Shown in pieces: positions 14,868 to 60,516 of a stretch of 64,000 bases of DNA. The stretch is from contig NC_086101.1 in the NCBI RefSeq assembly GCF_963921235.1, positions 15,810,001 to 15,874,000 on the forward strand, written 5' to 3'. Numbering within the stretch: position 1 is the first letter of the stretch; each line of letters starts with the position of its first letter. The translations under genes were made by a program, and so were the position numbers. The notes below the pieces were generated by a model. It was not told where the DNA came from and did not search any database. It worked only from the letters and a program-made list of their open reading frames with translations. The DNA is from Mobula hypostoma. Taxonomy: Eukaryota.

Positions 14868-15206
14868 CTCTCACTGTGAGATATGTCCCCGCCCCATATA
14901 TTTCCCATTCCTTTGTCTTCAACTTGCAGAAGTACATCGCAGAATCACTCAGCTGCACGTACTTCAGTTGCAGGGAAACATCTGAGCTGTTAGTGGAGGG
15001 ATCATCCCCTTGAGATGTGGAGAAGTGGTCTGTGTACTCTGCTGTTTCACTGGTCACTTCTGTTCCATTTTGGGCACCCTTGACCCAGTGGTGCGACCAT
15101 ATCTTACTCGTGACATTGTGTCTGCATGGAATAACCACCGCCTCCCCTTCCGTGACAAAAATGCTGGACTTGTCCTGAATGACCACAAACTTCTCAGCAC
15201 CAATGC
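14868..15206 (-). CDS. Orphan NCR3-like V exon (V2), intact ORF and splice sites
   Basis: ctccctgctttcag|GC ATT GGT GCT GAG AAG...CTC ACA GTG AGA G|gtaagt; 339 nt, phase 1-1; VVIPCRH, HHWVKG, DSAMYFC, YGAGTYLTVR. No leader or terminal exon found nearby. Confidence 0.85.
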
Positions 15207-15829: not shown

Positions 15830-18504
15830 CTTTCTTTCTATATTAATCTTTTTATTGATTTAAAAGGAACATAAATACAAACAAGAGGAGAATTATCTAA
15901 TATATATATCAATAACAATACAAACCGAGATTAAGATAGACATCATCAAAATCATACATAGTGTTAAGCTAGTATATAGTATATAATTAAAAAAAAACAG
16001 AAACAGCAATAATCCTGTTATCAGTTCATGAAGAGGAAAGAAAACAGCTTTGAATTTTAAATGAGGAAAAATAACCCCATTGCACTGTACAAAAAAAAAA
16101 CCAAAAAAAAGAGAGAAAAATGGGACTGGGCAGTTCATTCTGAGGATACGACCAAAAAAAAAAAGAAATAAAGACTTTCTGATCAACTCTAAAACTGCGA
16201 AAAAAAGATTGAAAGAGTAATAAATCAAATTAAATGAAAGTATTGAATAAAATGTCATCAGATTTGTTCAAATTTAAAGGATGTATCAAATATCCGACTT
16301 CTTATTTTCTCTAAACTTAGACAGGACATAATGGAGGAGAGCCAATAAAAGACTGTAGGTGGATTAGAATCCTTCCACTTCAATAAAATGGCTCTCCAAG
16401 CCAACGAATTCCCAAAAATTGCTGTAAGCACATTAAGTTGTAGATCCAGATCCAAAACTTTTGTTAGCATTTTAAAAACATCTCTCCAAAAGTTATCTAG
16501 CTTTATACAAGACCAATACATGTGAGTTAAAGTGGCCAGCTCAGTGTCACATCTGTCACAAATAGAACTGATATTGGAGAAAATATGCGCTAGTTTATCC
16601 TTTGATATATGGGCCCGATGTACTACCTTTGACTGTATCAAAGAATGTCGGGCACAAATAGATGAGTTATTAACCAAATGAAAAATTTTACTCCATTGAT
16701 TATCTGAAAATGACTCTTGAAATTCCGATATCCAAGCGCGTTTAATTTAATCATTAGATATCATTCGTGAGTTCAATAACCGTTTATAGATTATAGCTAT
16801 CAACCCTTTTTGAAATGGTTTAAACTGAAAGAAAGCATCTGGCATATTAGGTGGATAAGCAGAAGGGTAATTTGGCAACAATTCCTAGTTGGTAAATATC
16901 TAAAAAAGTGTACATTAGATAAATCATATTTATCCACTAACTGAGAAAAGGACATTAAACAGTCCCCTAAAAACAAATCTGAAAAAGTTATTATTCCCTT
17001 GGTTTTCTAAATTAAAAAGGCCTTATCCAAAATTGATGGTTTAAAAAATAATTGAGCTGGATATTTCTAGAAAGGATAAAATTATTTAACTCAAAAATCT
17101 ATGAAACTGAAACCAAATTCTTAATATATGTTTAATAATGGGATTAAAATCTTGTCTACTAATCTTAGAAAACAAAAAGGGAAGAGGAACTCCCAATAAA
17201 GAGGCCAAAGAGAATCAGTTCACCGAGTTTTCTTCCAAATCCAACCATGAAGGACATTCAAGTATATCTGAATAGTGAATCCAGAAAATAATATATCGAG
17301 TATGCATTGCCTAATAGTACATTCTAAAATTTGGCAAAGCCATACCACCATCCTTTTTTAATTTCTGCAATAAGGGTTTGCTCAGTCTAGAATTTTTATT
17401 TTATAGGCATCCGTTAGTCTCATGAGACCATGGATTTGCGCCTTGGAAAGTTTTCATGGTGCAGGCCTGGGCAAGGTTGTATGGAAGACCGGCAGCTGCC
17501 CACGCTGCAAGTCTTCCCTCTCCACGGCACCGATGTTGTCCAAGAGAAAGGTATTAGGACCGGTGTCGTCACAGAGCAATGTGTGGTTAAGTGCCTTGCT
17601 CAAGAATACAACACGTTGCCTCAGACCTTCAGATCACGAGACGAACGCCTTAACCACTTGGCCATCCTAAAAACTAGGATTTTTGTTGTTCCAAATATAA
17701 GATAAGATTATAGAATCTATTCTATCAAAGAACTTTTGAGGAACAAAGGAAGGAACTGCTTGAAATATATATAAGAATTTCGGTAAAACTATCATTTTGA
17801 TAGCATTAATTCGACCTATTAATGATAATGTCAGAGGCGACCATTTAGAAAGCTTTTGTTTGGTGTCGTCAATTAATGGAAAAAAATATATTTAAAGAGA
17901 TCCTTAAAATTTTTGGTAATTTTAATACCAGATAGGTAAAATAATTTTTAGCAATTCTAAAAGGTACTTGATGATTTGGGTCCGAGTAATTATTAATAGG
18001 AAGTAACTCACTTTTATGTACATTTAATTTATACCCAGAAAACCTATTGAATTCAGAAAATATAGATAACATAGAAGGAATAGATTTCTTAGAATCTGAA
18101 ATATAAACTAACAAGACATCTGCATATAAATAAACCTTGTGTATTTTGTCCACTGCTTTAATACCCTGAACAGTGTTAGAAACTCTAAGAGCAATAACAA
18201 GGGGTTCTAAAGCCAAGTTAAATAATAAAGGGCTAAGACGACATCCCCGCTGTATATCCCTATATAATGTAAAATAGGGAGATTTTTGATTATCAGTTAT
18301 AACCGCAGCCATAGGACCATGATAGATCAATTTAATCCAGGAAATAAATCCCGGGCCAAGATTAAATCTTTCCAAAACCTCAAATAAGTAAGACCACTCC
18401 ACCCTATCAAGGGCTGTCTCCGCATCAAGAGAAACAACAAATTCAAATTCTTTCGATGGAGAAGAATGAATCATATTTAATGATCTTCGACGGTTAAAAC
18501 GGCA
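15830..18504 (-). mobile_element. L1/Tx1 LINE ORF2 3' half
   Basis: SLDAETALDRVEWSYLF...QRGCRLSPLLFNLALEPL...YADVLL; C-terminal CDRC...HMYWSC; A/T-rich tail. Confidence 0.85.
17410..17668 (-). mobile_element. tRNA-headed SINE nested in the L1
   Basis: GC-rich block that interrupts AT-rich L1; minus-strand head gatggccaagtggttaaggcg resembles a tRNA A-box. Confidence 0.55.
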
Positions 18505-19459
18505 GCCGGTGATATTAAACGCGATTCTGATACTGATTCCGTTTCTGGTTCTGATTCTGCCATCAGCTGGAGTTGGCATTGGGGGTAAAAACTTTGAAAG
18601 AATGAGGTGGTAAAACGTGAGCAGAAATATTTTAACAAAGAAGTGATTGGGCCAAGGACTGCACAATTCAGTAGTTGCTATTTTAAAAACATTAGACAAT
18701 ACCGTACAGTAATGGGCCCTTCGGTAAACAATGTTGTGACAAACTAATTGGTGACCAGATGTCCAATTAGACTAACCCTTCCCAACATAATGTCTGCATC
18801 CCTGATTTCCTGCACATCCATGCGCCTGTTTAAGTGCCTGTTCAATGTTCTATTGTATCTGCCTCTATCTCGACCACCACCAGAGCATTCCAGGTACCCG
18901 CCATTCTCCGTGTAAAACAATTACCCACACATCTTTGAACATAACCCCTCTCACTATAAATGCATTCGCGCTGGTATTAAACACTTTTCCCTGTGAAAAT
19001 GATATCAACTGTCTGCTCTGTCTGTGTCTCTTATAAATAATAAACCTCTACCAGGTCTCTGCTCAGCTTCTGCTGCTCCAGAGAAAACAATTCACATTTG
19101 TCCAACCTTTCCCTACAGCACCTGCCCTCTAATCCAGACAGACTGTTGGTAAACTTCTTCTGCACCTTTTCCAAAACCTCACCCTGTTTTTATAACGGGG
19201 TGAACAGAACTGAATGCAATACCAGATGCAAACTAAATAATTATATAAAGCTGCAATGCAACTTCACAAGTCTTGAACTGATTACTTTGAGTAATTATGG
19301 CAAATAAACAGTAAGCCTTCTTTTCCACCCTATTAATGTATCTGGCCCCTTTCAAGGGAGATTTGCACTTGGAATTCAAGATCCTTCTGCTCATTGATAC
19401 TGTTAAAGGACTTGCCACAAAGAGCGTACTCTGTGTATATATTTGAATAATATTAATGT

Positions 19460-19506
19460 TCAAGAGCGAACTGGGAGGTATTTGACTGGGAAGTGTTTGC
19501 CAGGTT
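19460..19506 (-). CDS. Gene B short terminal exon (predicted secreted form)
   Basis: ccactcttcagcttttctccag|AA CCT GGC...TCT TGA = EPGKHFPVKYLPVRS*. The paralog at 41002-41048 differs at only 2 of 47 nt and keeps the acceptor and stop. Confidence 0.65.
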
Positions 19507-20949
19507 CTGGAGAAAAGCTGAAGAGTGGAATTGTTGGTGCATGGACTCAGTACAGACAGAATGGGCCGAATGTCCCCTTTTGAAAGGTCAACTCTCAATT
19601 TCCCTCCCTAGATTCTGCCTGACTTACGAGTTCCTCCAGCATTGTGTTCCTTTCATTCCAGTTTCCAGCACCAGCAGCCTCTTTGGAACTGGTATTGGTT
19701 TATTATTGTCCCATAATCTGAGGTACAGTGAAAAACTTGTCTTGCATACTGTTCATTTTGTCGGCGCCCAACTGCCCACCATTGAGAACAGCTACCATAA
19801 ACGCTCCCTGGGCAGGGCGAAAAGCATTATCAGGGATGCATCTCACCCTAACATGGACTTTTTACTCTCCTCCCATCCGGTAGGTGCTACAGGAGCCTTC
19901 GCTCCCGCACCAGCAGGCACAGGAAGAGCTTCTTCCCCAAGGCTGTGACACTGCTGAACCTCTCATCACAGCGCTAAGCAGTATTGCATCCGTATTGTAC
20001 TGTCTCAGTACTTTTATATTTGTGTGCTGTAGCACTTTTTTATTCACAGTTATTTTGTAAATAACACTATTCTTTGCATTTCTGGTCAGATCCTAAATGC
20101 ATTTCATTGGCTTTGCATCTGTACTCGGCACAATGATAATAAAGTTGAATGTAATCTAATCTAACCATTACGTGGCGCACGGTGAGGTAGTACTGTCCTC
20201 GGTAAATCAATAGCAGAGTGATGTGTAACAGTGACAGAGAAAGTGCAGTGTAGGGAGACAATGTCGTAACGAGGTAAATTATGAGGTCAAGAGCCCATCT
20301 GATCATACCAGGGAACCAGTTAATAGTCTTTTGACCGTGGGATAGAAGCTGTCCTTGCGCCTGGTGGTTTGTGCTTTCAGGCTTTTGTATCTTCTGCCCA
20401 ACGGGAGAGGGGAGAGGGGAGAGGAGAGAATGTCCTGGGTGGGTAGGGTCTTTGATTATGTTGGCAGCTTTACTGATGCAGCAAGAAGTCAGCAGACAGA
20501 GTCCTTGGAGGGGAGATTTAATTTGTGACCACTCACCCCCTCCACTTTTTCTGTGCTGGAACGATTTTGTCATTATCCAGTTGGTGAAATTCCAACAATG
20601 AAAATTAAAAACCTGCAGATGCTGGAAATCTGAGGTAAAAACTGGATATGCTGGAAACGCTCAGCACGTCAGGCAGCATCTGTGGGTAGTGAAACAGAGT
20701 TAATGCTTGAAGTGGAAGATCTTTCCTCAGCACTGGGCAAAACTTGTTTACAAGATTCTTCTTTTTTCTTGTTTACCCTCCTTCTCTTCCCTGAGGACTG
20801 GTTACAGATCTGAACACTTTGCTGCTTCTCTCCCCACAGTAGCTGAGTGACTTGCTAAGTGCCTCGAGCATTTTCCAGCCTTGACCAAATTCTGTTCGGG
20901 TGGTGGGTCTTATTTACTGAGACAAGCAGATAGTTGATGATTGGCTTAC

Positions 20950-21288
20950 CTCTCACTGCGAGATTCGTCCCTGCCCCATACATTTCCCACTGTATTGCCT
21001 CCAACCTGCAGAAGTACATCCCAGAATCATTCGGCCGCACGTCCTTCAGTTCCATAGAAACATCTGTGCTGTTAGTGGAGGGATCACCCCCTTGAGGTTT
21101 GAAGAAGCGGCCTCTGTACTCTGCTGTTTCATTGGTCACTTCTATTCCATTTCGGGCACCCTTGAACCAACGGTATGACCATACCTTATTCGTGACATTG
21201 TGTCTGCATGGAATAACCACCGTCTCCCCTTCTGTGGCAACAATGCTGGACTTGTCCTGAATCACCACAAACTTCTCAGCACCAATGC
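20950..21288 (-). CDS. Gene B NCR3/NKp30-like V exon (V3)
   Basis: 339 nt, phase 1-1, AG/GT intact: EKFVVIQDKSSIVATEGETVVIPCRH...YRWFKGARNGIEVTNETAEYRGRF...DSGMYFCRLEAIQWEMYGAGTNLAVR. Confidence 0.92.
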
Positions 21289-21999
21289 CTGAAAGCAGGG
21301 AGCAAACTTTAAAAATTGGTAAATCGGTTTACTGTGGTCACATTTTGTTCTTCATACATATCATTTTATCACATCGATTCAATGAGTTAGTGTAAAGGAG
21401 GAACAATAGCAGAATGGGGAATGAAGTGTTACAGTTACCGAGAAAGTGCGGATCGGAGCCTGGAAAAGAGGAACCTAGGAGTACGGGTGCACAGCTCATT
21501 GAAAGCGGCAGACAGGTAGTGAAGACAATGTTCAGTACGCTGAGCTTCAGTCAGAGCTTTGCGGACTGGAGTCCAGAAGTTATGTTTCTGTTGTACACGT
21601 CGTTGGTGAGGCTGCACTTGGGATATTTTGTACAGAATTGGCCACCCTGTTGTAGATGTTATTAATTAGAAAGCGCGGAGATATGATTTACCTGGATGTC
21701 GTCTGAAATTGGGGGCCCGAGTTACAAGGAGAGTTTGCATAGACTAGTACTTAATTCTCTGGAATGTAGGAGATTGAGGGGGCGACCTGATAGGGGTATA
21801 TAACACAATAAAGGGCATAGATATTCTGAAAACAGCATTTTACACCGGGAGACCGGGGTGTTGTTAACAGCAAGAGAACATGGGTTTAAGATTAGACGGG
21901 AGAGTTTTGAAAAAGATGTTAGATAATTTCTTCACACAAGCGGTGTTACGTGGTTGAAATGAGCTGACGGAAATGGCGGTGGCGGCGAGTAAATTACAA

Positions 22000-23320
22000 A
22001 CATTTTAAAGCCTTCTAGATAAGTACATGAGTAGGAGGGATTTAGCGGGCTGTGGGCCAAACGCGGGCAGATGGGACGAGTTGGCTGGTTAACACGATCG
22101 ACAAGGACGAGTTGGGCCGAAGGGCTTGTTTCCGTGTTAGGAGTCCACAAAGGAAGGAGGGAGAAGGGAGAAGGCGGCATCCTCAGTGTTCGACCCAGAA
22201 TTCAGCCCACGCTCCTATCCCCCGTCGGCTAGTCAGGGGGTCGATGTCGGAAGCCTGGAAGGGGCTTGTTCTGCTGCGTTTGTTTTTTGTTTTCTGTGTT
22301 GCTCTGCCGACATTGTGGACATTAATGTTGGCGCTGGAATGTGTGGCGACCCTCGGGCTGCCCACAGTGCCTCCGTAGGTGTGTTGGTTGTGAACGCAAA
22401 TGAAGCAGACGAACCTTCCCGCTTTTCCCGCGCTGCCTATTGCCTTCTCCCCCAAGCTGCAGCCGTAAAGGAACAGAAAGTTACTTACTGGAGGAGACGG
22501 TCATTAGCCACAAAATAGCGCCCACCTTCATCGTTACTCCTCTAAAGCAGAGGAGATATTTAGTGTTCGCTACTTCTCCCTTCTTACAGCCGCGCCTCCC
22601 TCCTCGTGCAACCTGTTGGAAAATTGGGAGGGATTAAGTACTGTCCACTGGATTTTTCCAATTGATTTCCGAATCACTGGAACGAGCTGGATAAACCTCC
22701 AGCGGAGTTACAAAGAGATTAGAAGCGGGGGAAGCGTGACAATAAGCGGTTCAGTGACGTTAGGGTCGTTGAGCGATGAGCCACGTCCTCTTCCTGGTAA
22801 GATGCCCTTTTGGACTGACAGATTCCAAACACAGTTTCACGTTCAAATCCCTCAGCGCGCAGCGCGCGAAGAAGGCAATTCAGCCCACGCCGATCGCCGG
22901 CTCTGCTCAAGTGCTGACTGGGCTACTCATTCTCCCCAACTTCCCTTCCACTCCTCAAATAATTGGTACCCACACTAGAGACAATTCCCAGATCCAATCC
23001 ACAAGTCGTAGAGGCGCGAAATGAATCGTAGCACCCGGCGGTGTTGGGGGAGCCCACACGGCTGGTGCATCCGCAGGGAAACAGGTGGAATATGCAAACT
23101 CCACCCATACAAAATGCACCAAAAATCGGGGTCGAACCCGTGGACGCAGGAGCTGCGAGAAAACAGCGCTAACAATTGCGGCAATGGTTCTACGTATCAA
23201 ACCGAAATGGTTAATGTAAGCTTACGAAAATGTCGTATCTCAGTTAATGTAAATTATTTCGCATTTGACTTCAATCCCCACAACAACGTGTCACTTTAAC
23301 GGAAGAGGTTAAATAATTGG
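22000..23320 (-). promoter_or_regulatory. CpG-rich region around and upstream of the gene B leader (probable promoter); paralog at about 44750-45920
   Basis: Visibly CpG-dense compared with the CpG-poor flanks, spans the start codon and is conserved in the duplicate. No TSS evidence. Confidence 0.4.
22489..22531 (-). CDS. Gene B leader (signal peptide) exon
   Basis: ATG AAG GTG GGC GCT ATT TTG TGG CTA ATG ACC GTC TCC TCC A|gtaagt. Joined to the V exon it gives MKVGAILWLMTVSSSIGA-EKF. Conserved at 45084-45126. Confidence 0.85.
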
Positions 23321-38760: not shown

Positions 38761-41001
38761 TAGATTATGAGAACACTCAGTCCTCTTTTATTGTCATTTA
38801 GAAATGCATACACGCATTAAGAAATGATACAATGTTTCTGCAGAGTGATATCACAGAAAACAGGACAAACCAAAGACTAACACTGACAGAACCACAAAAT
38901 TATAACATATAGTTACAGCAATGCAAAGCAATACCATAATTTGATGAAGAACAAACCATGGGTACGGTAAAAATAGTCTCAAAGTACCCGAGTCGATCGA
39001 CTCCCTAGTCCCCGATAGCGGCGGCAAAAGGGAGAAACTCCCTGCCATAAACCTCCAGGCACCGTCAACTTGCCGATGCCTTGGAAGCAGCCGAGCACAG
39101 CTGACACTGAGTCCATCCATCCGAAAACTTCGAGCCTCCGACCAGCCCCTCCGATACAGCCTCCCGCGCGCCGTCCTCTGCCGAGTGCCTTCGACCCTAC
39201 CACGGCCGCTAAATCAAGCAAAACCGAGGATTCGGGCCTTCTGCTCTGGAGATTCCAGTTACCACACAGTAGCAGCAGCAGCGAAGCGGGCATTTCAGAA
39301 GTTTTCCAGATTTTCCTCCGTACTCTCACGTCCGTCTCCATCAAATCAAAATTGTGCACGGTACCTACTTGACAGATTACAGATATCAATCACCGCAGAG
39401 GCCGCGCACGCTGCTGTCGTGCCGCCATCTTCTTCTCTTTTGCACATAAACATTTATATGAGTGCCTAATTATTTTCTATATTATCTCAATGTGCACATG
39501 TGAATGTACAAATTAATATAGATTTACTCACATAAAAATGGAAAAGGTTATATATGTAAAAGAAAGTTTGTGTATTACTTGTGAAGTCCTTATCCAAATA
39601 AAAATAAAATTAAAAAAAAAGAAAGAAAGAATTTCCAGAAAGATTTAAAATTAGTCAGCTCCATCTGGGGCACCAGCTGCCACAATATCCAAGACATTTT
39701 CAAGGAGTGGTATCTCAGAAAGGCGGCGTCCATCATTAAGGACCCCCATCACCCAAGACATGCCCTCTTCTCATTGTTACCATCGGGAAGGAGGTACAGA
39801 CCTGAAGGCTCACACTCAGTGATTCAGGAAATGCTTCTTCCCCTCTGCCATCCAATTTCTAATGGACATCGTACCCATGAACACTACCTCATGTTTTAAA
39901 GGTTATTTCTGTTTTTGCACGATTTCTAATTTAACTATTTAATATACGTATATACCTACTGTAATTTATCTACTTATTTATTATTTTTTCTATATTACCA
40001 TGTACTGCATTGCATTGTTACCACGAAAGTTAACAAATTTCACAACATATGCCGGTGATATTAAACCCGATTCTGATACTGATTACGTTTCTGGTTCTGA
40101 TCCTGCCATCAGTCAGAGTTGGCATTGGGGGTAGAAACTTTGAAAGAATGAGGTGGTAAAACGTGAGAAGAAATATTTTAACAAGGAGTGTGATTGGGCT
40201 ATGGACTGGACAATTTAGTAGTTACTATTTTAAAAACATCAGACAGAACTGTACAGTAACGGGCCCCTCGGTAAACAATGTTGAGCCAAACTAATTGGTG
40301 ACCAGATGTCCAATTAGACTAACCCTTCCCAACACAATGTCCATATCTCTCATTTCCTGCACGTCCATGCGCCTGTTTAAGAGCCTGTTCAATGTTCTAT
40401 TGTATCTGCCTCTACCTCCACCACCACCAGAGCATTCCAGGTACCCGCCATTCTCTGTGTACAACAATTGCCCACACGCCTTTGAACATACCCCCTCTCA
40501 CTTTAAATGCATTCAGTCTGGGATTAGACACTTTTCCCTGTGAAAATGATATCAACTGTCTGCTCTGTCTGTGTCTCTGATAAATTATAAACCTCTACCA
40601 GGTCTCTGCTCAGCTTCTGCTGCTCCAGAGAAAACAACCCACATTTGTCCAACCTTTCCTTACAGCACCTGCCCTCTAATCCAGACAGACTGTTGGTAAA
40701 CCTCTTCTGCACCTTCTCCAAAATCTCACCCTCCTTCTTATAACGGGGTGAACAGAACTGAATGCAATACCAGATGCAAACTGAATAATTATATAAAGCT
40801 GCAATGCAACTTCCCAACTCTTCAACTGATGACTTTGAAAAATTATGGCAAAGTAAGCCTTCTTTTTCATCCTATTAGCATATCTGCCCACCTACAAGGG
40901 AGCTTTGGACTTGGACTCCAAGATCCTTCTGCTCATTGATACTGTTAAGCATCTTGCAACTAAAAGCGTACTCTGTGTATACATTTAAATAATATTACTG
41001 T

Positions 41002-44000
41002 TCAAGAGCAAACTGGGAGGTATTTGACTGGGAAGTGTTTGCCAGGCTCTGGAGAAAAGCTAAAGCATGGAATTGTTGGTGAATGGACTCAGTACAGACA
41101 GAATGGGCCGAGTGTCCCCTTTTGAAAGGTCAATTCCCAATCTCCCTCCCTAGATTTTGCCTGACTTACAACTTCCTTCAGTACTGTGTTTCTTTCATTC
41201 CAGATTCTTTGGAACCTCTGCAGCCTCTTTGGAACTCGTATTTGTTTATTATTTTCTCATAATCTGAGGTACAGTGAAAAACTTGTCTTGCATACTGTTC
41301 ATTCTGATCAGATCATTACGTGGCGCATGGTGAGGTAGTACTGTACTCGGTAAATCAATAGCAGAGTGAAGTGTAACAGTGACAGAGAAAGTGCAGTGTA
41401 GGGAGACAATGTCATAATGAAGTAAAGTATGAGGTCAAGAGCACATCTGATCATACCAGGGAACCAGTTAATAGTCTCATAACAGTGGGATAGAAACTGT
41501 CCTTACGCTTGGTAGTTTGTGGTTTCAGGCTTTTGTATCTTCTGCCCAGTGGGAGAGGGGAGAGGAGAGAATGTCCTGGGTGGGTGGGGTCTTTGATTAT
41601 GTTGGCAGCTTTACTGAGGCAGCAAGATGTCAGCAGACAGAGTCCTTGGAGGGAAGGTTTGATTTGTAACCTCTTTTTCTGTGCTGGATCGATTTGGTCA
41701 TTATCCAGTTGGTAAAATTCTAACAATGAAAATTAAAAACCTGCAGATGCTGTAAATCTGAGGTAAAAAAAAAACTAGATATGCTGGAAACGCTAAGCAG
41801 CTCAGGCAGCATCTTTGGAAAGTGAAACAAAGTTAATGCTTGAAGTGGAAGATCTTTCCTCAGCACTAGGCAACAATTGTTTACAATATTCTTCTTTCTT
41901 GTTTACCCTCCAGCTCTGCCCAGAGGATTGGTCACAGATCTGAACATTTATCTGCTTCCCTCCCCACAGTAGCTGACTGACCTGCTAAGTGACTCTAGCA
42001 ATTTCCAGCCTTGACCAAATTCTGTTCGGGTGGTGGGTCTGATTTGCTTAGACAAGGAGATGGTTGATGATTAGCTTACCTCTCACTGCGAGATTTGTCC
42101 CTGCCCCTTACAGTTCCCATTGTATTGCCTCCAGCTCGCAGAAGTACATCCCAGAATCATTCGGCTGCACGTCCTTCAGTTGCATAGAAACATCTGTGCT
42201 GTTAGTGGAGGGATCACCCCCTTGAGGTTTGAAGAAGTGGCCTCTGTACTCTGCTGTTTCATTGGTCACTTCTGTTCCATTTCGGGCACCCTTGAACCGG
42301 TGGTACGACCATACCTTATTCGTGACATTGTGTCTGCATGGAATAACCACCGTCTCCCTTCTGTGGCAACAGTGCTGGACTTGTCCTGAATGACCACAAA
42401 CTTCTCAGCACCAATGCCTGAAAGCAGGGAGCAAACTTTAAAATTGGTAAATTGGTTTACTGTGGTCACATTTTGTTCTTCATACAGATCATTTTATCAC
42501 ATCGATTCAATGAGTTAGTGTAAAGAAGGATCAATAGAAGAATGGAGAATGAAGTGTTACAGTTACCGAGAAAGTGCGGATCGGAGCCTGGAAAAGAGGA
42601 ACTAGGACTACGAGTGCACAGCTCATTGAAAGCAGCAGACAGGCAGAGAGGACAATGTTCAGTACGCTGAGCTTCAGTCAGAGCTTTGCGGACAGGAGTC
42701 CAGAAGTTATGTTTCTGTTGTACAAGTCGTTGGTGAGGCTGCACTTGGAATATTTTGTACAGAATAGTCCACCCTGTTGCAGATGTTATTAATTAGAAAG
42801 CGCGGAGATATGATTTACGTGATGTCATCTGAATTTGGGTGCCTGAGTTACAAGGAGAGGTTGCATAGACTAGTACTTTATTCTCTGGAATGTAGGAGAT
42901 TAAGTGAGTGACCTGATAGGGGTATGTAACAAAATAAGGAGCATAGATATTCTGAAAACAGCATTTTTCACCGGGCAGAGGGTGTGCTACTGTTATAAGG
43001 GGGGAGGGGGGGCATTTCGTGACCCACCCAGATGCAAGACACAGACACTGAAGTACTAGGGACAGGACAGGACAGGACTAGAGACTAGAGTTAGGGACGT
43101 GACTGGATGCAGACTAGGAGTTGGGTCAATAACACAGTCTTAGGCTAGGACATTGGCTGGACAAGCGGGATCAGGACAACGAACTGGTAACTAGGAGCCT
43201 GGGCTTGGACTCCCAGCCAGAGACTGGACAAGGACCCAGAACCTGGGTCTTGACTTGGGCTCGGAGCTCGGAACTAGGCAAGGAGATGACGTAGCTACAG
43301 GAAGTGGCGTGGCTACAGCACGGCACGTGAGGTTCTTGGACATGACGAGGGAACTCCAGCCCAGGACGAGGAATCTCCTGCACCAGGCTGGGCGAGGCAC
43401 AAGGACAGGCTGAGGCACATGGACCGGATGAGAACACGAAGGCTTGACTTGGTCGAGGGAGATAGGAACGCAGAGCCTTGGTCGAGGGAGAACAGGAACA
43501 TGGAACACAGTGCCGGCACCCCTCCTTGGGAACAGGACGTAGGGCTGGGACTCATACACAGAACAGAGAGCCGGGACCCCTCCTTGGGAACAGGACGTAG
43601 GGCCGGGACTCATACATGGAATGTTGAACACGACGAGATGGTTCCCAACACATGGTCGCCGTAAATGGTCAGACCTACCTAGCGAAGGCGTGGGCACAGA
43701 GACAGTTCCCAACTCAAGGTTGCGGCAAACAGCCTGACCTACCTAGCGAAGGCGTGGAACAGAGACAGTTCCCAACTCAAGGTAGTGGCAGTCGGCCGGA
43801 CCTACCTAGCGAAGGCGTGGACACAAAGAGACAGTTCCAAACAACAAAAGACAGTTCCTTATCCAGACACAGCAAGGCTCCGGTCTTGCTTCTGTGGTAG
43901 AACTTTACAGCGATAAAGGCAAGGACACAGGCGAGGTTGCAGGTAATTCTTCAGGCCAAGGTTGCAGGTGAGGCTTCAGGCGAAGGACTACAGAAAGAAG

Positions 44001-45126
44001 GGAAAGGGAAGGGAACAGTCTGGCACTGAAGCCGAATCCAGGAGATGTTTATGTAGTCATCCCAAGATGAGAATCATGTGCGTCAATTAAGGCACACACA
44101 GGACAAGGGAATACCGGAAAAACTGTAATAAGGATCGATGGACCAGACCGTGAACCGGAATACGGACTTCACGGACTGGACCATGACAGCTACAAACAAG
44201 ACAGCACGGGTTTATGATCAGAACGGAGAGTTTTGAAAGGGATATTAGACAATTTCTTCACACAAATGGTGCTACGTGGTTGAAAAGAGCTGTCAGAAAT
44301 GGCGATTGCGGCGAGTAAATTACAAACATGAGTAGATAAGTACATGAGTAGGAGAGGTTTAGGGGGCTGTGGGCCAAACGCGGGCAGATGGGATGGGTTC
44401 GCTGGTTAACACGATCGATAAGGACGAGTTGGATCGAAGGGCCTGTTTCCGTGCTAGGAGTCCACAATCACTGAGGCTAAAATTGTACAGAATATCCCAA
44501 GTGCGGCCTCACGGTCACTGGTACGTCTGTAAGAAAACTTCCCAACTCCCGAGCTCAAGAGATTCTACACATGCGGGAAATCCAGAGTAACAGGACGAAC
44601 TCGAGAGGTCAGTCAGCAGTTATGGAGGGGAATAACCAGTTGACGTTTCGGGCTGAGACCCTTCATCATGATTGGAAAGGAAGGAGGGAGAAACGAGAAG
44701 TCTGCGTCCTCAGTGTTCGACCTGGAATTCAGCCCCACCCCCACCCTCCCCCGTCGGCTAGTCAGGGGGTCGATGTCGGAAGCCTGGAGAATAGGAGCCC
44801 GGACGTTGTTCTTGGAATTGGAGGACAGTCCGTGTGTGCGCGTGGGAGGGAGGAAAGGGGCTTGTTTTGTTCCGATTTGTTGTGTTCTGTGTTGTTCTGC
44901 CGACATTGTGGACATCAATGTTGGCGCCGGAATGTGTGGCGACCCTCGCGAGCTGCCCACAGTGCATCCGTAGGTGTGTTGGTTGTTAACGCAAATGAAG
45001 CAGACGAACCTTCCCGCTTTTCCCGCGCTGCCCATTGCCTTCTCCCCCAAGCTGCAGCCGTAAAGGAACAGAAAGCTACTTACCGGAGGAGACGGTCAGT
45101 AGCCACAGAATGGCGCCCACCTTCAT
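41002..45126 (-). pseudogene. Gene C: pseudogenised duplicate of gene B (leader 45084-45126, V 42080-42417, terminal exon 41002-41048)
   Basis: V exon is 338 nt: 1-nt deletion after ATEG, core Trp changed to Arg (TGG>CGG) and TAT>TAA stop in the YGAGT motif. Leader MKVGAILWLLTVSS and splice sites remain intact. Confidence 0.88.
42991..44188. mobile_element. 1.2-kb solo LTR in gene C intron 1, with 5-bp TSD
   Basis: TGTTA...ATGACA flanked by GCTAC at 42986-42990 and 44189-44193. Absent at the paralogous site (about 21865). Confidence 0.85.
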
Positions 45127-46698
45127 CGTTACTCCTCTAAAGCAGAGGAGATATTTAGTGTTCGCTACTTCTCCCTTCTTACAGCCGCGCCTCCCTCCTC
45201 GTGCAACCCGCTGGAAAATTGGGAGGGATTAAGTACTGTCCACTGGATTTTTCCAATTGATTTCCGAATCACTGGAACGAGCTGGATAAACCACCAAGAG
45301 AGTTACAAAGAGATTGGGGGGGGGGGGGGGAGGCGTGACAATAAGCGGTTCAGTGTCGTTAGTGTCGCTGAGCGATGAGCTACGTCCTCTCCTTGGTAAG
45401 ATGCCCTTTTGGACTGACAGATTCCAAACAGTTTCACGTTCAAATCCCTCAGCGCGCAGTGCGCGAAGAAGGCAATTCAGCCCACGCCGATCGCCAGCTC
45501 TACTCCAGTGCTGACTGGGCTACACATTCTCCCCAACTTCCCTTCCACTCCTCCCGTAATTCGCTCCCACACTTGAGACAATTCCCAGATGCAATCCACA
45601 AGTCGTAGGGACACGGAATGAATCCGTAGCACCCGGCGTGTGGGGGGAGCCGACACGGCTGGTGCACCCGCAGGGAAACTGGCGGAATATGCAAAGTCCA
45701 CACATACAAACTGCACCAAAGATCGGGGTCGAACCCGTGTCGCAGGAGCTGCGAGAAAACAGCGCTCACATTTGCGGCAATGGTTCTACGTATCAAACCG
45801 AAATGGTTAATATAAGCTTACGAAACTGTCGTATCTCAGTTAATGTAAATTATTTCGCATTTGACTTCAATCCCCACAACAACGTGTCACTTTAACGGAA
45901 GAGGTTAAATAATTGGTAACATATCAATTGGTAGTGGTTGGTGAAATGGGCTGTCCAGGGAGGGGTAGCACCTCTGCTGAAGCGGCTTGTCCTCTCCATC
46001 CTGGGACAGCTCACTTACCTTTGGGGTCCATCAGACGCTCAGCTCCAAGTACCTGTCTGCATGCGAAAGCGGCCACACTCGGGTAGACCGCTTCGATAGG
46101 CGGGCTAAACCAGGTGAAGGCAGCCGGTGGCAGTGAGATAGGGGATTTCCTGTCTTATTACACGAGAGGAACCTATGGAAATCTATGGAATGGGAAACAG
46201 AATTAATGTTGATCTCCTCCGCCCGACTGCACAGATGTGATCAACAGTGAGATCCAACAGCCAGGAAGGCGGTTCTGCAACACTCCGTGGACAGCGCACG
46301 GCATTTCAATGCACGGAAGATGTCATGGTCACCCACTACAACCAAGGAAGACCCCAGTTTATGTCGACTTCTAGTACCGCTGCACCCGGACTTCCGACGG
46401 CAAGAGTGTGGAACTGTCCCAGTTAACTTATCCACGTTAAAACCCCCGCTCAGGTCTCCTGTGATTGTTGGTACGCCGGACAACCGCGAACAAACGAATC
46501 ACGTCGTTCACACCTCTTGACGGAAGATAAAATAGTTAAGATAGTATTTTGTAGATTTTGGAAATCTGAAATAAAAACAGAAAATACTTTTAAAAACTGA
46601 GCAGATCATGCACCATCTGCGGAGAGAGAAACACTTAATATTTCTACTCTGAGTCAGAGCGAGATGTTAACGTTTCCGTTTCTCCCGAAGGATCTCAG

Positions 46699-60388: not shown

Positions 60389-60516
60389 NNNNNNNNNNNN
60401 NNNNNNNNNNNNNNNNNNNNNNNNNNNNNNNNNNNNNNNNNNNNNNNNNNNNNNNNNNNNNNNNNNNNNNNNNNNNNNNNNNNNNNNNNNNNNNNNNNNN
60501 NNNNNNNNNNNNNNNN
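60389..60516. other. Assembly gap (128 N)
   Basis: Run of n, flanked by TC/CA-rich sequence. Confidence 1.

Follow-up and report, generated by a model that had tools for sequence, protein, structure and literature searches.

A leader exon and an NKp30-like V exon of the ray Mobula hypostoma very probably form the 5' end of a three-V membrane receptor gene

The window analysed here is a stretch of 64,000 nucleotides (nt) from the genome of the ray Mobula hypostoma (contig NC_086101.1, positions 15,810,001 to 15,874,000), and its content consists only of a cluster of NCR3-like receptor sequences together with repeats. On the minus strand, positions 19460-22531 hold a leader exon, a V exon and a short open piece of 47 nt, which an initial annotation had joined into a complete three-exon gene for a secreted, NKp30-like V domain protein of 142 amino acids (aa). 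Here we report that this stretch is very probably the 5' end of a larger gene, LOC134346461, encoding a membrane receptor with three V domains, and that the 47-nt piece is most likely part of an intron. A complete three-exon gene is not supported: the splice donor at 20950 is joined to a second V exon at 15206 in a RefSeq model that fits the window exactly. The claim of a secreted 142-aa product is likewise unsupported: the model contains a transmembrane (TM) exon, and the 47-nt piece does not rise above chance level.

The two readings agree at the N-terminus. RefSeq protein XP_062903899.1 is the product of the same gene, and the signal peptide, the V domain and the junction between them in the shorter reading are the same as its first 127 residues. 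The two differ in what follows this N-terminus, since the RefSeq protein adds two further V domains, a TM segment and a tail, whereas the 142-aa reading adds 15 residues from the intronic piece.

Gene structure of LOC134346461

XP_062903899.1 (uncharacterized protein LOC134346461, Mobula hypostoma RefSeq) is 467 aa long, with three V domains and a TM segment. By exact-match mapping combined with a brute-force search for the exon chain over GT-AG borders, its residues 1-421 were placed at 100% identity on eight minus-strand exons, all bounded by GT-AG. The last 46 residues are encoded past the start of the window, which is consistent with the 35.3-kb span of the gene in assembly GCA_963921235.1, within which no other gene is called.

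The coding part of exon 1 (22531-22489, minus strand) comprises 43 nt from the ATG at 22531 to a donor of the form A/GTAAGT, and ends in phase 1. It encodes the signal peptide MKVGAILWLMTVSS(S), probably cleaved after IGA, and is matched identically by residues 1-15 of XP_062903899.1. Exon 2, here termed V1a (21288-20950, minus strand; 339 nt, phase 1-1), lies between the acceptor ...ctgctttcag/ and the donor G/GTAAGC and is identical to residues 16-128. Four N-glycosylation sequons (NVT, NET, NST and NDS) are present in V1a, as had been described, and the single 339-nt exon closes with a J-like strand, YGAGTNLAV(R), which points to a non-rearranging domain of the VJ type.

The remaining exons in the window follow on the same minus strand. 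Exon 3 (15206-14868; 339 nt, leaderless) carries the second V domain, V1c, as residues 129-240, and exon 4 (6864-6535) carries the third, V2, a membrane-proximal domain of a different subtype, as residues 241-351. A short stalk, the uncharged TM helix FVTILLVILSTVFGISGSILLISILF and the stop-transfer sequence RRKLRSV are encoded by exon 5 (5590-5477), and three cytoplasmic-tail micro-exons follow as exon 6 (2884-2866), exon 7 (2768-2731) and exon 8 (1934-1894). The tail of the product is acidic and proline-rich. The earlier statement that no convincing TM exon was found downstream concerned the unit only. In the V1a-V1c intron none that convinces was found either, but one does lie at 5590-5477, 14 kb past the unit; it had been missed because the earlier search went no further than the duplicated unit described below.

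V1a and V1c are 87% identical in nucleotides and ~70% identical in amino acids, with identical acceptor contexts and near-identical donors, and V1c is open; V2 shares 42-44% identity with V1a. All three V exons are of phase 1-1, which allows splicing from the donor at 20950 to the V exon that follows at 15206. In the window, no match to a leader peptide was found upstream of V1c or V2, and self-BLAST locates the leader/promoter block in only two copies, at 22.1-24.0 kb and 44.7-46.6 kb. Without a leader of their own, V1c and V2 would be expressible only as internal exons.

By self-BLAST, the homology between V1a and V1c extends past the exon on both sides, by ~160-190 nt upstream and by ~70 nt downstream. 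These limits, taken with the 87% identity and a ratio of nonsynonymous to synonymous substitution rates (dN/dS) of ~1.15, indicate that an exon was duplicated within the gene and then underwent relaxed or diversifying change.

In the proposed arrangement, exon 1 would supply the 5' untranslated region (UTR) and a cleavable signal peptide, and exon 2 would open a series of three tandem VJ-type V-set domains belonging to the NCR3 (NKp30) family of sharks and rays. Splicing would then proceed from the donor at 20950 to 15206 (V1c), on to 6864 (V2), and through the stalk/TM exon to the tail micro-exons, yielding a type I membrane glycoprotein of 467 aa that carries three V domains, in place of a secreted single V domain. 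The 47-nt piece would be intron sequence behind a pyrimidine-rich AG, open by chance for 15 codons. We infer that the annotated splice chain is that of the main transcript, and the protein probably acts at the cell surface, as one of the receptors encoded by the ray NCR3-like cluster.

Relationship to NKp30 and to other shark and ray proteins

The NKp30-like label originally given to the V domain is upheld by several comparisons. V1a matches the Pfam V-set family (PF07686) with an E-value of 9.9e-12, exceeding the gathering score. An exhaustive HMMER search with V1a against 1.8 billion representative proteins returned shark and ray relatives, of which multi-V ray proteins were the closest; nurse shark NCR3 (QTT61898.1, 'natural cytotoxicity triggering receptor 3') was matched with an E-value of 3.6e-14 at 37% identity, and other relatives bear the automatic labels NCR3-like, SIRP-beta-like and pIgR-like. 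When V1a is compared with solved structures, no natural single-domain protein scores better than human NKp30 (NCR3; E 1e-8). A family profile built from 16 family V domains scored human NCR3 at 78 bits (E 5e-21) against the PDB, as compared with at most 62 bits for single SIRP domains, and the J-like motif is conserved throughout the family alignment. Judged by its sequence, V1a appears soundly placed as an NKp30-like V domain of the VJ type.

The protein as a whole departs from its mammalian counterpart. In human NKp30 there is a single V domain, the TM segment carries an arginine for pairing with CD3-zeta/FcR-gamma, and the tail is short. Its gene (NCR3; PDB 3NOI, 3PV6, 6YJP and 9FWW for the protein) resembles LOC134346461 in that a single V exon comes after the leader exon, whereas LOC134346461 has three V exons in series in the model in place of a single V ectodomain, a TM segment at 5590-5477 without the charged (Arg) residue, and a longer, acidic and proline-rich tail. 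Because the V domain agrees with NCR3 in sequence while the whole protein lacks the single V and the charged TM, the predicted product is best called an NCR3-family multi-V receptor.

The nurse shark protein QTT61898.1 is like V1a in that its VJ-type domain is contained in one exon, and both show the core motifs W, DSG.Y.C and YG.GT.L.V. It differs from LOC134346461, with its three V exons, in having one V domain in a protein of 213 aa. The shark NCR3 family is reportedly described by Kinlein et al. 2021 (Immunogenetics 73:333).

Closer relatives are found within the cluster itself. XP_062903898.1 (five V domains, labelled pIgR-like) and XP_062903900.1 (two V domains) are close paralogues of the LOC134346461 product, sharing with it the leader, the V1-type and V2-type exons and phase 1-1, and V1a is matched at 93% identity by the first V domain of XP_062903900.1. 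These sisters have other numbers of V exons than LOC134346461 and tails of other lengths. Tyrosine motifs resembling the immunoreceptor tyrosine-based inhibitory motif (ITIM) are present in XP_062903900.1 and absent from the window-encoded part of the LOC134346461 tail. The 5' UTR directly upstream of the ATG (22532-22620) is conserved among relatives, and the models of XP_062903898.1 and of Hemitrygon akajei translate it as a false N-terminal extension (…KKGEVANTKYLLCFSGVTM…).

Models with the build leader-V1-(V1)-V2-TM exist for M. hypostoma LOC134346462, Mobula birostris, Hypanus sabinus, Hemitrygon akajei and the horn shark, Heterodontus francisci, and in none of the modelled relatives is a V2-type domain the first domain. 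As the models of these relatives are automatic, the shared build is consistent with the structure described above rather than proof of it. In the white shark, Carcharodon carcharias, the isoform model XP_041069025.1 leads from a V domain directly into an ITIM-bearing tail without a TM segment, which implies that soluble forms produced by TM-exon skipping may exist in this NCR3-like family.

The 47-nt piece

The proposed terminal exon (19506-19460, minus strand; 47 nt) lies behind the acceptor ...cttttctccag/ and encodes EPGKHFPVKYLPVRS before a TGA stop. Its coordinates and arithmetic were reproduced: with GT-AG borders, the pieces of 43, 339 and 47 nt join into 429 nt with an open frame of 142 aa ending in TGA. 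In the RefSeq model, this piece sits inside the 5.7-kb V1a-V1c intron and forms no part of XP_062903899.1.

The 47-nt piece had been singled out for its near-identity with a duplicate copy at 41048-41002 (minus strand), which belongs to an upstream duplicate of the leader/V unit (40051-46573, minus strand; 88-91% identical). The observation itself is correct, as 45 of the 47 positions agree and the two differences comprise one synonymous change (GAA>GAG) and one replacement of R by C, yet it is at background level. The surrounding duplicated block (18505-19760 and 40051-41306) is 90.3% identical overall; given that background, 45 of 47 has a probability of 0.14, and 29% of the 47-column windows in the block do as well. 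Conservation of the piece above the neutral background was thus looked for in the duplicated block and not found. Moreover, the duplicate V exon (42417-42080, minus strand) is dead, having lost 1 nt from a G run and gained a stop by TAT>TAA, so that the pair shows nothing about selection on a coding tail.

The open frame is equally ordinary. The intron contains 338 AG sites; read in the phase needed here, the tails behind them stay open for a median of 14 aa, and half extend to at least 15. The lack of an AATAAA just after the stop, as first described, extends to the whole 1.96 kb scanned, and the first ATTAAA lies 981 nt away. No short isoform of LOC134346461 is annotated in RefSeq, and a word-based search with V1a of a collection of 5.8 billion proteins, including the M. 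hypostoma RefSeq set, found no protein of 62-196 aa sharing words with it, a length filter that left out the relatives of 213-602 aa. The arguments advanced for a secreted gene (the open frame, the 45 of 47 identities, the synonymous change) are what neutral intronic sequence in a recent duplication yields, and the likeliest account of the 47-nt piece is that a site resembling an acceptor in the V1a-V1c intron happens to be followed by an open frame.

Two other explanations of the intron sequence were tried and rejected. The 47-nt piece might be the decayed start of a V2-type exon, its GKHFPV resembling KSKSFTV by eye, but its alignments were no better than those of shuffled sequences. In this test, positions 19000-19650 were locally aligned against the V2, V1a and TM exons with their flanks, and only 19103-19069, well outside the 47-nt piece, beat the shuffles, in that case against the V1c flank. 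As for a TM exon within the V1a-V1c intron, hydrophobic open stretches occur only in the AT-rich, low-complexity sequence at 15.9-16.2 kb and look non-coding. The wider stretch at 15900-18000 is an AT-rich part of the intron (GC content 0.34) in which long, low-complexity frames rich in phenylalanine and leucine mimic hydrophobic exons.

Read evidence

Contigs from four runs, only guessed to be RNA, were aligned to the window, and most of their matches are repeats. Depth over 19414-19527, which includes the 47-nt piece, is zero in all four, and coverage of the V exon is thin. No joint between 20950 and 19506 is listed in these runs, nor could a junction from the V1a donor to any other exon be read, the 3' end of V1a being barely covered. 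The zero depth weighs little, however, as the runs are guessed to be RNA, the contigs are divergent and the V1a 3' end is hardly covered. Two observations concern the 5' part of the gene: the alignments of the X1 and X4 contigs end exactly at the acceptor border of V1a, at 21289, and an X2 contig of 102 nt spans 22491-22592, covering 5' UTR and leader, at 94% identity.

Alternative readings of the locus

Several points weigh against a three-V membrane receptor as the product of this locus. The RefSeq model is an automatic prediction whose RNA support is not visible, and no V1a-V1c junction was seen in the same four runs, subject to the same scant coverage of the V1a 3' end. The V-exon contigs are only 90-95% identical to the window, from which it follows that they derive from paralogues or relatives. 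The dN/dS of V1a against V1c given above is uninformative on whether V1c is under constraint. Finally, the acceptor at 19506, with 15 pyrimidines in 18 positions, is among the best 4 of the 338 intron AG sites, and it may be used occasionally.

This last point touches on the reading in which the 47-nt piece does serve as an alternative last exon and gives rise to a minor soluble isoform with a single V domain, of 142 aa (~124 aa when mature), that could act as a ligand decoy. The phase at 19506 is right and the acceptor there is rich in pyrimidines, acceptor and open frame are both retained in the duplicate, and models of other family members include forms without a TM segment, such as white shark isoform X4 (188 aa). 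The retained duplicate, however, belongs to a dead V exon, and both the conservation and the openness of the 47-nt piece are at chance level. With no polyadenylation signal within 980 nt of the stop, zero depth in the four runs (for what thin coverage of guessed RNA can tell) and no short form in RefSeq or in the protein collection, we regard such an isoform as highly unlikely.

A different possibility concerns the V exons themselves, which could be used as alternatives: the leader and V1a would be spliced straight to V2 with V1c skipped, and the three-V protein would be either one isoform among others or an over-joined model. Since the V exons are all of phase 1-1, any subset of them stays in frame; both the neighbouring LOC134346462 and the Hypanus sabinus homologue are modelled as leader-V1-V2-TM, and the dN/dS between V1a and V1c is about 1. 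Against this, chains of three and more V domains are modelled in Mobula birostris, Hemitrygon akajei and the horn shark, and V1c is intact, with splice sites identical to those of V1a. Alternative use of the V exons is, in our estimate, very improbable as the account of this gene, and the three-V membrane receptor remains the preferred reading.

Implications

LOC134346461 is already known to RefSeq, under an uninformative name. In the literature searchable here, no description was found of the way in which NKp30-type VJ domains have apparently been multiplied in rays, to give chains that are two to five V domains long. The wider ray family of multi-V NKp30-type proteins is a more interesting topic than LOC134346461, the biological weight of which is small. 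The present result serves as a correction: a leader, a V exon and a short open piece in loci of this kind are not to be taken for a complete gene of a secreted protein, because the V exons are phase 1-1 cassettes spread over tens of kilobases and the TM exon can sit far past the duplicated unit. The soluble one-V form, if true, would give an NKp30-type receptor of a cartilaginous fish its own dedicated secreted isoform.

Upstream duplicate and repeats

The duplicate leader copy in the upstream unit lies at 45126-45084 (minus strand). With its dead V exon, the unit may represent a dead gene start, or it may be an alternative first exon feeding the same gene. Near the upper end of the window, 60389-60516 consists of 128 N, an assembly gap or masked stretch. 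Within the V1a-V1c intron, a high-copy repeat insertion of ~395 nt (19760-20155) is not found in the duplicate unit, and it is marked in the self-BLAST by the gap between the blocks 18505-19760 and 20155-21849. Contig depth on this repeat reaches thousands in all four runs, which indicates that it comes from a very abundant and probably transcribed repeat family.

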